Assembly (NCBI RefSeq): GCF_963676685.1
Contig: NC_092344.1
Location: 20,150,001 to 20,214,000, forward strand
Source: Mytilus edulis
Taxonomy: Eukaryota
Reading direction: 5' to 3'
DNA length: 64,000 bases
The notes beneath the pieces are model-generated. The model worked only from the letters and a program-made list of their open reading frames with translations, was not told the DNA's origin and did no database searches. This document shows positions 27,101 to 31,036 of this stretch, piece by piece. Each line of letters begins with the position of its first letter. Positions within the stretch are counted from its first letter, which is position 1. Both the position numbers and the translations under genes were made by a program.

Positions 27101-27870
27101 GACTTGGAAACAACTTATGGAAATGAACGTCGCCTTTTATGGAGTGTATTTTAATACAGCATTATTAAAATGGTTTAATGCATTGGTTTCCTGTTTTGAA
27201 CAGTACTTTATTTGAGCCTTTTTATTCACGTTTTGTTAAGCAAATGCACTAAACTATAAAATGTAAGTTGTATGAAAAAAAAAAATATTCGCTCTATTAA
27301 ACATGGACGCACTTCAAAAAACCTTGACTGATTTGATAACAGGCTTTTAAAATGAATTTACCCTCCAAAATGTGCTTATAAATTCAATAACAAGATTTTT
27401 TTGTGTAAAAAGTGTGCATATCTAAGTATGTGTCAATTCCATATATCGTTTCCTTTGACATTTGCATTGGTATGTGGTTAAAAATGGACTTAGTCTATAT
27501 ATGGAAAAAAGGCTTAATTAAACAAAATAAAGTAGGATTGATGATATATAATTTTTTTTTTATCAGAAATACTTATTTATCTTGAATGATATTTCATATT
27601 AGGTTCTTTCTTTTTTTTTACGTCCTTTGATTCAAATTCTGTGGTCAGATCTGGTAAGCTGTGGTGGACAGGGACAGGGTGGGAACAGAGCATCACCCTG
27701 TCAAGGAAACTAACTTCCTATTTGCCTGACCATTGGTGGCTATTTTGATAAATGCATCTGACATTATGTAAAACACGTTTTTTTTTATAAATATTTGATA
27801 TTATGTCAGTGTTGTTCATCATCAGTAAAGCCATAGTTTCCATTGTAAATACATATATATATATATATAT

Positions 27871-28287
27871 AAGTACGTCTGAGTCAGTGACAACTCTACA
27901 ACAGATGTATCCATCGGATCGCCATCAATGATGGTGATACATGGCTGTGTACATAATGTATATACAACTCGTCTAAACATCAACCCAACAATGTTAGATC
28001 TGTAAATTTGCTTTCGCAAATTTTTGGTTCTTCCCTCGCCGGGATTCGAACCCATGCTACTGTGATATCGTGACACCAAATCGCCTGCACTGCAGCCGTC
28101 CCGCTAGACCACACGACCACCTGGGCTCTCAAAAAAGAGCTTTCGCTGGCCATGTGTTACCTTTCCACGTCAGTTTTAATCTAGCGGCGTACTACAGTAC
28201 ATGATATATAAGGCATGAAGATGTTATTGTTACAGATCAGCTAAATTATCTATAGTAAAGGATCCTACAAATTAATGTAAGATACAG
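27871..28287 (-). mobile_element. Hammerhead plus tRNA-like Pol III repeat unit (retrozyme/SINE), circularly permuted near-monomer
   Basis: Reverse complement of the unit at 29687-30258. Contains a hammerhead (28177-28133) and A/B boxes, and ends in (TA)n at 27853-27871. Confidence 0.85.
28133..28177 (-). ncRNA. Minimal type-I hammerhead ribozyme motif (core variant)
   Basis: AAAA-CTGACGT-GG aaa GGT aacacatg GCC a GC-GAAA-GC-TC-TTTT. Stem I is perfect and the site is UC, but there is an A9>U change and one stem II mismatch. Confidence 0.7.
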
Positions 28288-28289
28288 AT

Positions 28290-28832
28290 TATAGCAGTTT
28301 TACAAAGTTGTGAAACTGTAATCTTTAAGCTATTTATTGGAAAGTAGAATGCTTTTGCTACATAAATATAGGCTGTTTTTGACGATACCATGTACATATA
28401 TCGTGTACTAACATCATAAAGTCGTGCTAAATTACTGAAATCTTCACAATTTTAGCATTTTAGTTAAATTTGAGACGGTTTTCGACTTAAATGAAAGTGG
28501 CCGCATTCGTGTTCATCCATAATATTTAAATATAAGTTGTAATTGATGATAATACATAACATATATAAAGGTTGAGGATGAACACGGATGCGGCCACTTT
28601 CATTTTTGACAAAAACCATCTCAAAAGTGACGTTTTTTGGCATATTTGATAGATTTTTCATATTAAAGCTTGAATCGGAGCGTTTTTAATGACAAAACCA
28701 GTTAAAATCTTTCACAAAAACTAATCAAATCAATTGAAATAGACATTTAAGTGTTTAAAAAGCGTCCAAAATCTTTCGTTAGATGAACCTGAAATTTGAG
28801 GCCAAAATCAGCCCTTACCGGACCTACCCCTT
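28290..28832. mobile_element. One-ended non-autonomous DNA transposon fragment (possibly Kolobok-like)
   Basis: Internal palindrome GAAAGTGGCCGCATTCGTGTTCATCC...GGATGAACACGGATGCGGCCACTTTC (28493-28601) and a terminus CCCTTACCGGACCTACCCCTT. The second TIR is absent. Confidence 0.5.
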
Positions 28833-28869
28833 TACAGATCTAACATTGTTGGGTTGATGTTTAGACGAG

Positions 28870-28906
<37 letters not shown>
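28831..28906 (+). repeat. Short retrozyme-unit fragment followed by (TA)18
   Basis: TTTACAGATCTAACATTGTTGGGTTGATGTTTAGACGAGT, then a TA run at 28871-28906. Confidence 0.85.
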
Positions 28907-28910
<4 letters not shown>

Positions 28911-29501
28911 TCTATAAAAACGACCAACCAGCAAATTTACTATGTACCGGATCGTCTAGAATAGGCGATACTATGCAGATAAGGAAAAAATTATATCAGT
29001 CTAAAGATTTGCACAACGGTACTGATATAAGATGTTATAATACGAAAATGTTGTTATTAAATCGTGCTGACAAATATTTCGGCTCAACAAATGGCCTTCT
29101 TCAAGTGTCACAAGTTTTAACAATAGTGATACATAATGTATAAGGTGTAAAAATAGATCAGTAATAATACAGATAAGTTTTGGTCGATTGATTTTAATCC
29201 AAAATCTTGAATATCATAATATAAACAAAACACTATAATTCAATATACGTGACTGTGTATATTATCAATAAAAATGAGTGAAAAAACAAAACCGTTAGTA
29301 TTTCTTATTGATGCCGTTTGGATGGTGTACATTAAGTTCCTTTATCCAAAAGCTTTCCCGAACCTGTCGCTGGGCATCACTCCAGTGAATATTCTGTTCA
29401 ATCACTAGAATTTTCATGCGGTTAAAGTCATCAGGTTTGTGACCCGACTGTCTGAAGTGCTGAAATACTGGGAGAAGTGGCTTCTTAGAGATATCACTCC
29501 T
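28907..29501 (-). mobile_element. 3' fragment of a Penelope-like retroelement (GIY-YIG endonuclease C-terminus plus 3' region)
   Basis: Stop-free frame 29501-29295: RSDISKKPLLPVFQHFRQSGHKPDDFNRMKILVIEQNIHWSDAQRQVRESFWIKELNVHHPNGINKKY*, matching the PLE endonuclease pattern HF...H...RExFWI..L....PxG(L/I)N. Flanked by (TA)n on both sides. Confidence 0.85.
29068..29110 (-). ncRNA. PLE-type minimal hammerhead-like motif
   Basis: TGACA-C-TTGAAGA-AGGC catttgttga GCC-GAAA-TA-TT-TGTCA. Stem I is TGACA/TGTCA, stem II is GGC/GCC, stem III is the palindrome AATATT, and the core is a UUGANGA variant. Confidence 0.6.
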
Positions 29502-29513
29502 ATATATATATAT

Positions 29514-29604
29514 AGGGAAGAACCAAAAATTTGCGAAAGCAAATTTACAGATCTAACATTGTTGGGTTGATGTTTAGACGAGTTGTATATATATATATAT
29601 ATAT
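29514..29604 (+). repeat. Retrozyme-unit fragment ending in (TA)n
   Basis: AGGGAAGAACCAAAAATTTGCGAAAGC...GACGAGTTG followed by a TA run. Confidence 0.85.
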
Positions 29605-29973
29605 TTGAACGTAGTTTTCAATTTAGACTCGTTTATATATACAACTCGTCTAAACATCAACCCAACAATGTTAGATCTGTAAATTTGCGGGACGGCTACA
29701 GTGCAGGCGATTTGGTGTCACGATATCTCAGTAGCATGGGTTCGAATCCCGGCGAGGGAAGAACAAAAAATTTGCGTAAAGCAAAATTACAGATCTAACA
29801 TTGTTGGGTTGATGTTTAGACGAGTTGTATATACATAATGTACACAGCCATGTATCACCATCATTGTTGGTGATCCGATCGATAAATCTGTTGTAGAGTT
29901 GTCACTGACTCAGACGTACTTATAACTATAATTATTTTCTGTGACTGTATCTTGCATTAATTTGACGCTAGAT

Positions 29974-30020
29974 TAAAACTGACGAGGAAAGGTAACACAC
30001 GACCACCGAAAGCTTTATTA
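29974..30020 (+). ncRNA. Minimal type-I hammerhead ribozyme motif
   Basis: TAAAA-CTGACGA-GG aaa GGT aacacacg ACC a CC-GAAA-GC-TT-TATTA. The CUGANGA and GAAA cores are canonical, stem II is GG/CC plus GGT/ACC, and stem III is the palindrome AAGCTT. Confidence 0.8.
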
Positions 30021-30027
30021 TTGTGAA

Positions 30028-30120
30028 GCCAAGGTGGTCGTGTGGTCTAGCGGGACGGCTACAGTGCAGGCGATTTGGTGTCACGATATCTCAGTAGCAT
30101 GGGTTCGAATCCCGGCGAGG
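30028..30120 (+). promoter_or_regulatory. tRNA-Leu-like internal Pol III promoter (A box and B box) of the repeat unit
   Basis: A-box-like TGGTCGTGTGG(TCTA) at 30035-30045 and a perfect B box GGTTCGAATCC at 30102-30112. No complete cloverleaf or acceptor stem. Confidence 0.75.
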
Positions 30121-31036
30121 GAAGAACAAAAAATTTGCGAAAGCAAATTTACAGATCTAACATTTTTGGGTTGATTTTTAGACGAGTTGTGTATACATAA
30201 TTGCTGGTGATCCGATGGATAAATCTGTTGTAGAGTTGTCACTGACTCAGACGTACTTATATATATGTTTTCAATTTAGACTCGTTTATATATATTGAGG
30301 ATGTGGAAAGGTAATATAAGGTATAATGACTTGTCATTTATTTTACCAAATCATTTTAAGGTGTAAACATGGTATTAAAATTTGCTATTAGTCCATAGAA
30401 AATTAAAATTTTGATGCACGAAAGTCAGCGACAGCCACAAAAGAATAAAATGTACATTTGTTTTGGTCTACTTATTACATAAACATTTCATAAACTTTTT
30501 ATCGATTTAATCATGACTTCGTTGCCAGATATTCCTTATTGGTATGCCTTTTTTACTGGTCTAAATACTTTAACAATTTGTTTATGGCTAGTTTACAGAC
30601 TCCGATATTACAATTAAAATATCTATAAAGAATTCACAGATGAGGGGAGATAACTCTGAACACAAAAATGACAAACAAATGTCTAATGGAAAGCTAGGAA
30701 TTATTACACAGATAATGGTTAAAGAAGTCGATAGTGATCTTTTTAACATAAAATAATTTAAAGGAGCTCGATTTTACTATGAAAAACTTTGTTTTTGAAA
30801 GGATTTTTTTTAAATTTATGATATATAAGAATTTAGTATTTAAAACATCTCTTTCCGTACATCATAAATATAAGTATAAATGTATATATTTATTAGCTAT
30901 AAATGCAGAAATGTTTATAATAAAAAGATAACAATGGATTTCTTTGAAAAGACAGCTGAACATTCAGTGTTAACTATTTCATCTTTCATTGATATTCACT
31001 GTATTCACTGCATCGTGACTCGTAACTTTATGGCTA

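Follow-up and report, generated by a model that had tools for sequence, protein, structure and literature searches.

A retrozyme-like family of tandem non-coding repeats, apparently undescribed, in the company of Penelope-like elements in Mytilus edulis

In a 64,000-nt stretch of the Mytilus edulis genome (GCF_963676685.1, NC_092344.1, 20,150,001-20,214,000; hereafter the window, in whose positions all coordinates below are given), repeat copies in both orientations join a hammerhead-like motif to a tRNA-like module. This raises the question of whether they belong to a mobile RNA that transcribes and cleaves itself, as the original prediction held, or to a family that is mobilised by another element. 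The features of the locus are collected in Table 1. Both hammerhead-like motifs, as well as the A box and perfect B box of each copy, were found where they had been predicted, and the plus- and minus-copy arms are 89% complementary. In the plus motif, AAAA (29975-29978), CTGACGA (29979-29985) and GAAA (30008-30011) are followed by GC-T-T; in the minus motif, CUGACGU (28173-28167) is followed by GAAAGCUC at 28144-28137 and then by U6. The minus copy, which is included in the genome-wide pattern listing as G000:C1:20178134-20178173, is of the U9 / ..CCAGC / GCUC-U6 type and stops at the minor 3′ end of the unit. The head-to-tail spacing of 363 nt and the 80-nt deletion proposed to explain it are likewise borne out, the local period being short because the 79-nt 5′ segment (unit 1-79), which the minus copy retains, is deleted from the plus unit at 29964-30266.

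Table 1. Positions in the window of the family copies and their neighbours
Feature	Position	Strand	Remark
(TA)n microsatellite	27853-27871		abuts 3′ end of minus-strand family copy
Family copy, unit 1-405	27862-28267	-	94% to reference unit; BLAST map
tRNA-like module, minus copy	28036-28127	-	B box 28042-28052, A box 28101-28111
Hammerhead-like motif, AAAA-CUGACGU-..-GAAA-GC-UC-U6	28133-28177	-	A9-to-U; G at 11.2
5′-truncated family fragment, unit 261-312	28831-28882	+	runs out into (TA)n 28870-28911
5′-truncated Penelope-like element (PLE), distinct from the family	28905-29505	-	C-terminal end of GIY-YIG ORF (stop 29295) and 3′ UTR
5′-truncated family fragment, unit 231-312	29514-29595	+	(TA)n at end
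3′-terminal fragment of second, ~555-bp hammerhead-bearing tandem family	29606-29641	+	..TTTAGACTCGTTTA + TA
Inverted 5′-truncated family fragment, unit 256-308	29636-29688	-	head-to-head with next copy; PLE-style inverted structure
Family unit 163-439	29687-29964	+	5′-truncated within tRNA-like module
Next family unit, 80-404	29964-30266	+	TA repeats after unit 404
Hammerhead-like motif, AAAA-CUGACGA-GG..CC-GAAA-GC-UU-UAUUAUUG	29975-30020	+	core intact; position 17 = U; helix I weak
tRNA-like module, plus copy	30027-30125	+	A box 30043-30053, B box 30102-30112
Further fragment of ~555-bp second family	30267-30294		

Genome-wide, arrays with periods of 439 and 441 bp set the full unit at 439-441 bp, so that the predicted tandem unit stands and its length of ~443 is slightly revised. 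The unit consists of a leader of 80 nt, a hammerhead-like motif of the minimal dimer type, a U-run, the tRNA-like module with its A and B boxes, and a body carrying two TA-rich 3′-end sites; the tRNA-like module is its best-conserved part, and the 3′ half of the hammerhead-like motif its most variable one. A genome-wide count of the pattern CTGACGWGG..GAAAGCTNNTT gives 3,029 matches, as opposed to 0 for its reversed control, and at such numbers the hammerhead-like pattern at the locus is beyond chance; the bare CUGANGA..GAAA string occurs 8 times in the 64-kb window, and hence is meaningless by itself. The family comprises at least 3,000 copies in this Mytilus-type genome, and its youngest subfamilies, with 1.0-1.2% divergence, have the CUGACGU core (A9-to-U). 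The defects noted earlier in the two hammerhead-like motifs are indeed present; they are subfamily-diagnostic variants rather than private mutations that together restore a perfect consensus, and the combined type (A9 + ..ACC + GCUC/UUUU) is found only in rare copies, e.g. L040. In one L018 unit, an internal deletion is replaced by TA. The predicted fold of the circular unit has an MFE of -134.6 kcal/mol, vs -106.7 +/- 6.6 in shuffles (z = -4.2), and pairs 68% of its bases.

In both copies the tRNA-like module carries an A-box-like TGGTCTAGCGG and a perfect B box GGTTCGAATCC, with about 47 nt between them. It begins about 11-15 nt past the predicted cleavage site, in agreement with the ~12 nt originally given, and directly upstream of it lies a U6-U7 run. 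ARAGORN and the Rfam tRNA model left the head unrecognised, giving only a spurious-level call at a very lax threshold, and the label tRNA-Leu-like is dropped, as no isotype is assignable. Promoter activity of this module, as judged from its boxes, is putative.

The hammerhead-like motif combines conserved with degenerate features. Its core, C3-U4-G5-A6-N7-G8-A9...G12-A13-A14, is intact in the window plus copy and in roughly one third among the matches listed (first 100 pattern matches). Across 65 distinct sequences, A15.1 and U16.1 in GAAA-GC-U-C/U are invariant, the AGCU is palindromic and the predicted cleavage site has the spacing of a hammerhead; moreover, 82% of helix cells are paired vs 38-66% in slid registers. 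The same 65 sequences contain 0 two-sided changes in helices I/II and score no higher for covariation than shuffles do; 32 of them lack pairing at 7-47 and 22 at 17-36, and in a third pair 10.2-11.2 is broken. Helix I consists of four A-U pairs only, and helix II has an irregular build of 2 bp, an internal loop and 3 bp. With the Rfam hammerhead covariance models, neither the window region nor the best copy (211 nt searched) gave a match at E<=10, and the positive control, a classical mussel hammerhead, was found with 33 bits and E = 7e-7 (Rfam Hammerhead_1); the models also miss the dimer-type hammerhead of the second family, so their sensitivity for such variants is low. The motif is best described as a weak hammerhead-ribozyme look-alike with putative catalysis, and the predicted self-cleavage finds no support in its sequence, given the missing Rfam match, the variable 3′ half and the A9-to-U change in active lineages.

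How the copies arose can be read from 92 independent, dispersed insertions on many chromosomes. Their main 3′ end is a fixed, internal TATATA, the last unit stopping at unit 312 or 405 (59% of 3′ ends at unit 300-314, 17% at 400-414), and by coverage half of genomic units stop at unit 312. The 5′ starts are scattered over the entire unit, the first unit being cut short at arbitrary points; they are slightly more frequent at unit 120-179 (15/92) and around the tRNA-like head, at unit 133-165. Few copies start near the head, about 100 nt upstream of the head are part of the repeat unit, and among 17 starts read near the head 0 fell at the predicted cleavage site. Insertions are 0.45-2.7 units long, with a median of 462 nt. 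Stretches of (TA)>=4 occur at 65% of 3′ flanks, at 82% of canonical 3′ ends and at 46% of 5′ flanks, the background being 3.6%. Inverted neighbours number 38 among 128 chains (21 head-to-head and 17 tail-to-tail). Divergence within arrays averages 3.0% and mostly lies at 0-3%, with one array at 18%, vs 6.1% between loci, and since junction variants are identical within any one array, units were not joined singly. No TSDs, including none of 4-5 bp, were discernible at insertion ends in (TA)n, and no LTR pair, PPT or complete terminal repeats were seen in the insertions. Multimeric or circular RNA templates, when copied, would be expected to leave permuted partial tandems of this kind, constant in 3′ end and variable in 5′ start, which supports the original view of a non-coding mobile family on such templates that is no plain SINE.

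The same anatomy links the family to Penelope-like elements, which have been described with partial tandems, inverted 5′-truncated copies and (TA)n targets (PMC8557442), and on which animal retrozymes have been proposed to depend (PMC7229834; bioRxiv 10.64898/2026.07.22.740005). Full-length relatives of the PLE fragment at 28905-29505 encode RVT_1 together with GIY-YIG at the C terminus, and at 8 of 11 PLE loci the family lies within 1.5 kb. The 3′ UTR of this fragment terminates in ..AGACTTTTA(TA)n, and the motif AGAC-N4-6-T(T)A-(TA)n is common to the PLE, the ~555-bp second family and both 3′ ends of the unit; the second family, moreover, occupies the same microsatellite nest. The PLE association of metazoan retrozymes is thus found here in the choice of (TA)n as target, in an architecture with partial tandems and inversions, in the 3′ end and in the adjacency. 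The 3′ UTR of the neighbouring PLE contains no hammerhead, and the apparent tie between family and PLE lies in the common target, the architecture and the short 3′ motif, not in a long common tail. In its behaviour, the family resembles a non-autonomous partner of PLEs. The PLE fragment sits inside the interval covered by the original prediction, which overlooked this mobilising machinery.

Stranded RNA-seq from two runs (X21, X22), with the strand call presuming a dUTP-type library, showed family RNA to be very abundant, with strand depths of 860-2,590 and 13-178, i.e. about 20-40:1 sense-biased with genomic copies lying in both orientations. Coverage is even across the whole unit, SNP mixtures point to expression from several subfamilies, and A9-to-U (CUGACGU) is present in 84-88% of the RNA. 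Unit-junction reads ('go back 438') numbered 475 and 643, the RNA being continuous through every junction, and reads entering the (TA)n flanks amounted to a few dozen per site among the sites listed. Because reads traverse every junction with almost no flank reads, we infer that the RNA is circular or long multimeric, as the original prediction had it; junction reads also fit multimers, the genome having tandem arrays. The U7 run upstream of the tRNA-like head is crossed by most reads (566/887 and 747/791 with spanning indels, plus clipped reads). In both X21 and X22, any pile-up of starts or ends at the head, and of read ends at the predicted cleavage site, stayed below one fifth of local depth, the level from which pile-ups are reported. 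The lack of such a pile-up at the cleavage site is also to be expected of an RNA that is mostly circular. Since U7 is read through and no 5′ pile-up is seen, the bulk RNA, with its conserved tRNA-like module, does not appear to be a Pol III monomer: it neither starts near the A box nor stops at the first strong T-run, as a type-2 Pol III transcript would, and the proposed Pol III self-transcription is not supported for it. A minor Pol III precursor may be compatible with these data.

Based on these findings, we consider it moderately probable that the copies form a non-autonomous, non-coding retroelement family of the retrozyme / Penelope-dependent kind with a 439-441-nt unit. A rather unlikely alternative is a SINE-like RNA without any ribozyme, whose Pol III transcription would start at the tRNA-like head and go on to the U-run before the next head, and which the PLE machinery would concatenate or copy, the hammerhead look-alike being irrelevant. 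It would suit the A and B boxes in the best-conserved module, the U6-U7 run directly before the head with just one other T4 run per unit of the young subfamily, the mutated hammerhead core of active subfamilies and the mild excess of 5′ starts near the head; however, most reads at the U-run cross into the head, unit coverage is even with no pile-up above threshold, and the identical junction variants within arrays indicate that units were not added singly. It is unlikely that SINE and retrozyme are combined in one hybrid, wherein the tRNA-like module would be the Pol III promoter and the U-run in the 3′ strand of helix I the terminator, so that start, stop and cleavage would coincide, and a Penelope-like RT would insert copies of the circularised RNA into (TA)n. 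The original prediction in full, with an own Pol III promoter, an active self-cleaving hammerhead and circularised monomers as retrotransposition templates, is quite unlikely: circular or multimeric RNA, permuted insertions, the existence of copies with an intact core and UC/UUUU site, the AGCU palindrome of helix III typical of dimer-type animal hammerheads (PMC4209133) and the Sm-alpha precedent (PMC2770079) speak in its favour, but U7 is read through with no 5′ ends, and the motif has A9-to-U in active lineages, no covariation and no Rfam match.

The units could also be a satellite-like tandem repeat spread as DNA, by unequal exchange, eccDNA or TA-microsatellite recombination, with the RNA as passive read-through and the resemblances as relics or chance. 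Recombination-prone TA repeats do flank and interrupt the units, as in the TA-replaced deletion of L018, no TSD proves retroposition, and the hammerhead region is the most variable; yet the fixed 3′ and variable 5′ ends of insertions dispersed over many chromosomes, an architecture and a 3′ motif in common with the PLE and another family, the strand bias despite both copy orientations with almost no flank-junction reads, and the strong conservation of the tRNA-like module make this origin improbable. That the family belongs to a known class, either the Helenus-type TRIMs with a tRNA-like sequence inside LTRs or ordinary LINE-dependent tRNA SINEs, is highly improbable, even though A and B boxes are present and Helenus families able to form tandem arrays occur in Mytilus (PMC10886601). 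A Helenus TRIM (two TG..CA LTRs, PBS, PPT, 4-bp TSD) was rejected on the arbitrary truncation of the first unit, the TATATA ends at unit 312/405 inside (TA)n flanks, and the lack of complete terminal repeats and of a 4-5-bp TSD in the insertions; a tRNA-derived, LINE-dependent SINE was rejected on the starts over the whole unit, few of them near the head with its upstream ~100 nt, on the (TA)n ends and on the lack of discernible TSDs.

For the favoured Penelope-dependent reading, we propose that the family RNA would accumulate as unit-length circles or long concatemers, and that a Penelope-like RT/GIY-YIG enzyme would nick (TA)n. Priming of the cDNA may then take place at the internal UAUAUA that follows the common AGAC motif, mostly at unit 306-312 and more rarely at about 400-405, and reverse transcription would make 0.5-3 turns of the template. 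Processing to unit length, if any, would most likely involve the hammerhead acting as a dimer through the palindromic AGCU of helix III, followed by RtcB-type ligation; hammerhead processing is the weakest step, because the motif is degenerate (A9-to-U) in currently active lineages. The tRNA-like module may drive transcription of a minor precursor, or have a role in structure or recognition.

Among known systems, the family is apparently analogous to Sm-alpha / Sj-alpha of schistosomes, which likewise join a tRNA-derived Pol III-box module and a type-I hammerhead motif in a short, non-coding, highly repeated and tandem-prone unit, in another phylum and with unrelated sequence. Whereas tRNAscan assigns >2,300 Sm-alpha copies to tRNA-Gln (PMC2770079) and activity has been reported for the Sm-alpha ribozyme (Ferbeyre et al. 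1998, going by the title cited in PMC2770079), the mussel tRNA-like part is unrecognised by tRNA finders and its hammerhead is a minimal variant, missed by Rfam and with A9-to-U in active subfamilies; (TA)n targeting and PLE-style insertions, on the other hand, are demonstrated in the mussel family. Mg353, the non-LTR retrozyme of Mytilus galloprovincialis (PMC7229834), resembles the family in its few-hundred-nt non-coding tandem units with one hammerhead or hammerhead-like motif each, its abundant heterogeneous RNA over the whole unit, its highly self-paired predicted fold and its proposed PLE dependence. A hammerhead of the Mg353 type coexists in the same genome with about 27,000 occurrences. 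Mg353 differs in its unrelated sequence (PMC7229834 supplement), which agrees with the earlier suggestion that the present family may be undescribed, in its unit of 350-390 nt vs 439-441 nt here, and in its canonical hammerhead, matched by Rfam Hammerhead_1 with 33 bits, whereas the motif here is unmatched. Its circularity was established by Northern blot and RNase R (PMC7229834), that of the present RNA being putative. Retrozymes are said to carry no promoter (PMC7761336), with which the conserved A/B boxes of the mussel unit contrast.

The minimal hammerheads of PLEs (PMC4209133) share with the motif a short helix I (4-5 bp), a helix III of A15.1-U16.1 plus a small palindrome, implying dimer action, the conserved G10.1-C11.1 and a high sequence variability, and their published in vitro activity is low (PMC4209133). 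However, they lie in pseudo-LTRs rather than in a non-coding tRNA-bearing unit and have a helix II of 6-8 bp instead of the irregular one here, where compensatory changes are lacking and the neighbouring PLE 3′ UTR is without a hammerhead. Helenus TRIMs (PMC10886601), reported from Mytilus, also place a tRNA-like A/B-box sequence in a short, non-autonomous, array-forming repeat; here, by contrast, no LTR pair, PBS, PPT or short TSD was seen, and the copies are 5′-truncated permuted tandems in (TA)n.

Retrozymes and PLEs are both poorly understood, as regards retrozyme transcription, minimal hammerheads in vivo and PLE template choice. The family offers a tractable case, with very abundant RNA, amplified natural A9 and U9 core variants, a conserved tRNA-like module, and a defined priming site (UAUAUA behind AGAC) that is common to a young RT + GIY-YIG element and a second hammerhead family. 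Repeat annotation would probably tag its units as SINE or satellite and overlook the link to PLEs. If the hybrid reading were true, the family would be a PLE-dependent, Pol III-promoted mollusc retrozyme, a natural case of a retrozyme with its own promoter, which retrozymes lack according to reviews. As a tractable case, the family lets one test directly if circle formation and mobility require the ribozyme or by now do without it.

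Both hammerhead-like motifs of the original prediction were recovered by direct reading of the sequence. On the forward strand AAAA-CTGACGA (window 29975-29985) is followed by GAAA (30008-30011) and then GC-T-T, and on the reverse strand the copy at 28177-28133 carries CUGACGU, with G replacing C at 11.2, then GCUC and U6; complementarity between the two motifs is 89% (inverted pair I12). A tRNA-like stretch with an A-box-like sequence and a perfect B box lies 11-15 nt past each motif, two units stand head to tail at a spacing of 363 nt (direct pair D3), and 79 nt of the reverse-strand copy are missing from the downstream unit, in line with the proposed deletion. 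Although the bare CUGANGA..GAAA string has eight chance occurrences in the window, which contains no N stretches, a family-specific hammerhead pattern matched 3,029 times in the genome (1.37 Gb, 14 chromosome-scale contigs) and 0 times with a reversed control, which confirms the sequence observation. The repeat unit measures 439-441 bp by TRF, close to the full length of ~443 first estimated, and its parts are numbered on one reference unit, positions 1861-2299 of locus L018.

Coordinates of the features of the 440-bp family and of associated elements
Feature	Location	Strand
A-box-like TGGTCTAGCGG	window 30043-30053	+
A-box-like TGGTCTAGCGG	window 28111-28101	-
Perfect B box GGTTCGAATCC	window 30102-30112	+
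Perfect B box GGTTCGAATCC	window 28052-28042	-
Leader	unit 1-80	
Hammerhead-like motif	unit ~81-130	
U-rich spacer, variable	unit 131-140	
tRNA-like module	unit 141-235	
Body, terminating GACGAGTTG-TATATA	unit 236-312	
Body, terminating GACGTACTTA-TA	unit 313-405	
Linker	unit 406-439	
5′-truncated Penelope-like element (PLE): C-terminal end of GIY-YIG ORF and 3′ UTR terminating AGACTTTTA(TA)n	window 28905-29505	-
3′-end fragments of second tandem family, ~555 bp	window 29606-29641; 30267-30294	
~555-bp non-coding tandem family	L076:345-1482	
Mg353-type hammerhead, example	L035:303-346	

Unit chains were mapped at 81 loci (128 chains), and 92 complete independent insertions were obtained. Of these 92, 59% have their 3′ end at unit 300-314 and another 17% at 400-414; the 5′ start occurs at any unit position, and the length ranges over ~0.45-2.7 units with a median of 462 nt. 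Such a pattern, in which the 3′ end is constant and 5′ truncation varies across more than a unit length, is the hallmark of target-primed reverse transcription from a template longer than one unit. At least four TA repeats adjoin 65% of the 3′ flanks (82% of canonical ends) and 46% of the 5′ flanks, compared with 3.6% of random windows. The 128 chains include 38 adjacent inverted copy pairs, of which 21 are arranged head to head and 17 tail to tail, and one inverted pair lies in the window (29636-29688 on the reverse strand against 29687 on the forward strand); partial tandems, inverted 5′-truncated neighbours and (TA)n targets have been described for PLEs (PMC8557442).

Units within an array diverge mostly by 0-3% (mean 3.0%, with one array at 18%), compared with 6.1% between loci, and a private spacer variant is common to all units of an array, indicating that each array arose by copying of a single multimeric or circular template. 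Together with the fixed 3′ end and the scattered 5′ starts, this identity within arrays upholds the earlier inference of copying from circular or multimeric templates. One array of the youngest subfamily (L065:1407-2240; G000:C1:27775562-27776395) has a 417-bp period, an internal deletion copied through all of its units and thus further evidence for a single template per array. In another array, one unit has positions 313-431 swapped for expanded (TA)n (L018:1401-1421), which suggests that the internal TATATA site is also a hotspot of deletion or recombination.

The neighbourhood points to the enzyme that may be involved. The PLE of the window is inserted in (TA)n, and its 3′ UTR of ~390 nt is without a hammerhead; with 97-98% identity among copies and at least 888 candidates, the family to which it belongs is, judged by sequence, young, and longer copies (such as the one at locus L075) encode RVT_1 and GIY-YIG domains. 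The 440-bp family occurs within 1.5 kb at 8 of the 11 PLE loci. Short 3′ fragments of the ~555-bp family, which ends in ..TTTAGACTCGTTTA(TA)n, adjoin many copies of the 440-bp family, and a 33-nt sequence beside many copies, once considered a "tail extension" of the PLE, is instead this 3′ end. The ~555-bp family has a dimer-type hammerhead, CAUCA-CUGAAGA-GA..UC-GAAA-UCCGGA-UC/UGGUG, with a palindromic helix III (UCCGGA) and a 5-bp helix I, and its motif reads as more convincing than that of the 440-bp family. The order AGAC, 4-6 nt, T(T)A and (TA)n is common to four 3′ ends, namely that of the PLE, that of the ~555-bp family and the two ends of the 440-bp unit; it may serve all of them as a priming or recognition site, and the proposed connection with the PLE enzyme rests chiefly on it.

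Raw reads from two stranded runs of one study (~6% of each run sampled) were mapped to one old-type unit with the predicted cleavage site at its centre, yielding 4,646 and 5,887 family reads, or about 530 and 710 for every million records. Coverage spans the entire unit, with a depth dip at 2402-2446 because the reference unit is of the old type. Depth reaches 860-2,590 where the first mate maps to the reverse strand vs 13-178 where it maps to the forward strand, so that, assuming the usual dUTP chemistry, the RNA has the hammerhead/tRNA sense. SNP mixtures indicate that several subfamilies are expressed, and the marker of S1, the youngest subfamily, is present in 60-73% of reads. Reads that extend into (TA)n flanks number no more than a few dozen at each listed site, although unit 312 is where half of the genomic units end. 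This near lack of flank reads and a strand bias of 20-40:1, from genomic copies in both orientations, speak against passive read-through and point either to transcription from an internal promoter or to stabilisation of the sense RNA, for instance in circular form. Reads crossing the unit junction ("go back 438") numbered 475 and 643, and in neither run did read starts or ends pile up to a fifth of the local depth at any position. The RNA probably takes the form of either circles or concatemers, and short reads fit both because genomic arrays exist. In a model of the fold as a rod, CGCUAGA upstream of the hammerhead is predicted to pair with UCUAGCG of the A-box region, and the predicted circular MFE of the unit is -134.6 vs -106.7 +/- 6.6 for shuffles (z = -4.2). 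A random-primed run of another study (X24) gave low, unstranded, chimeric-locus coverage; on L018:2207-2645, ~47 of its reads join 2224/2226 and 2494/2496 on opposite strands, with several fixed chimeric junctions, and these look like transcripts of inverted-repeat copies embedded in host RNAs.

Among the rival explanations, a TRIM (Helenus) or an ordinary SINE is contradicted by the insertion anatomy, and both readings were rejected. Satellite-like spread at the DNA level is a less likely rival, given the constant 3′ end and variable 5′ starts of the insertions. Transcription by Pol III, either of a unit without a ribozyme or, as the original prediction had it, of a unit with its own promoter and a self-cleaving hammerhead, draws on the tRNA-like module, which is the best conserved unit part and has suitable box sequences and spacing. 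In the expressed variant, U7 lies directly upstream of this head, and spanning indels at U7 (566 of 887 and 747 of 791 reads in the two stranded runs) reveal that most reads cross it; moreover, starts did not pile up at the head in either run. Therefore, the abundant RNA is not a Pol III monomer, and the claim of Pol III transcription is not supported for the bulk RNA; the module may act structurally or may give rise to a Pol III precursor that is short-lived. The tRNA-Leu label was dropped, as ARAGORN (normal and pseudogene settings) and the Rfam tRNA model found nothing. At the gathering threshold and at E<=10, Rfam matched neither a hammerhead nor a tRNA in the window or the best copy, and its matches at inverted repeats there were hairpin-driven miRNA look-alikes only. 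An unrelated inverted repeat (window 28466-28625; 65-nt arms, 83% complementary, 27-nt loop) with sub-threshold miRNA-precursor matches is probably MITE-like.

Regarding the self-cleaving hammerhead, all core nucleotides are present in about a third of copies among the matches listed, A15.1-U16.1 never varies, G10.1-C11.1 is conserved, H occupies position 17, and all that is left of helix III is the AGCU palindrome, as in the dimer-type hammerheads of animals and PLEs (PMC4209133). The motif sits in exactly the element type where hammerheads are expected. The proposed checks went against it: the Rfam Hammerhead search returned no match at E<=10, the best copy included (211-nt search), compared with 33 bits for the Mg353-type hammerhead, and helices I and II displayed no compensatory change in 65 distinct sequences, two helix pairs being disrupted in between one-third and one-half of these. 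The Rfam models also leave the ~555-bp family hammerhead undetected and are hence insensitive to such variants. Unit 101-140 is the most variable part, with 9 of 25 shared variant sites and a divergence of 7-16% vs 1.3-4.5% over most of the remaining unit. A9 is an invariant nucleotide of the hammerhead core. The oldest copies (3.4% divergence) keep it with a poor helix I (GCUU/UAUUAUG), intermediate copies combine it with GCUC/U6-7 and a G-G mismatch at 10.2-11.2, and the youngest (1.0-1.2% divergence) have CUGACGU, the form of 84-88% of the RNA; the subfamily history runs the wrong way for a working hammerhead. Most core mutations are strongly deleterious as a general statement (PMC3088659), and a literature search returned no A9U-specific data. 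By descent, the motif probably represents a hammerhead of a weak minimal dimer-dependent kind, and putative ribozyme activity is doubtful for the lineages that are active at present.

Retrozymes lack promoters according to reviews (PMC7761336), and schistosome Sm-alpha is a known case of a short repeat that unites a hammerhead with a tRNA-derived module (PMC2770079). Retrozymes have already been described from mussels, and a dependence on PLEs has been proposed for them (PMC7229834; bioRxiv 10.64898/2026.07.22.740005); comparison with the published Mytilus retrozymes ruled out identity, the 440-bp family being distinct in sequence and hammerhead. The Mg353-type hammerhead (query from the PMC7229834 supplement) has about 27,000 genome copies, often ~355 nt apart, and its score with Rfam Hammerhead_1 is one bit below the gathering cut-off, so that default annotation would miss it. 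A recent bivalve SINE survey mentions neither PLEs nor hammerheads (PMC11481361), and a literature description was found neither for the 440-bp family nor for any mollusc retrozyme that has a tRNA-like module. The 440-bp family itself is apparently undescribed.

The anatomy of units and insertions, the targeting of (TA)n, the proximity to PLEs and the abundant unit-spanning sense RNA are observed, and we propose the following mechanism. The PLE RT/endonuclease would nick (TA)n, the TA 3′ end would anneal to the internal UAUAUA behind AGAC, and circular or concatemeric RNA would be copied for 0.5-3 turns, with inverted fragments possibly arising as in PLEs. Least certain, and by analogy with other retrozymes in which hammerhead cleavage and RtcB-type ligation were shown (PMC7229834), is that dimeric hammerhead cleavage and such ligation could provide unit-length circles; of the 17 starts read near the head, 0 lie exactly at the predicted cleavage site, and they scatter over unit 133-165. 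The 440-bp family may be a non-coding repeat copied from circular or multimeric RNA by the PLE enzyme.
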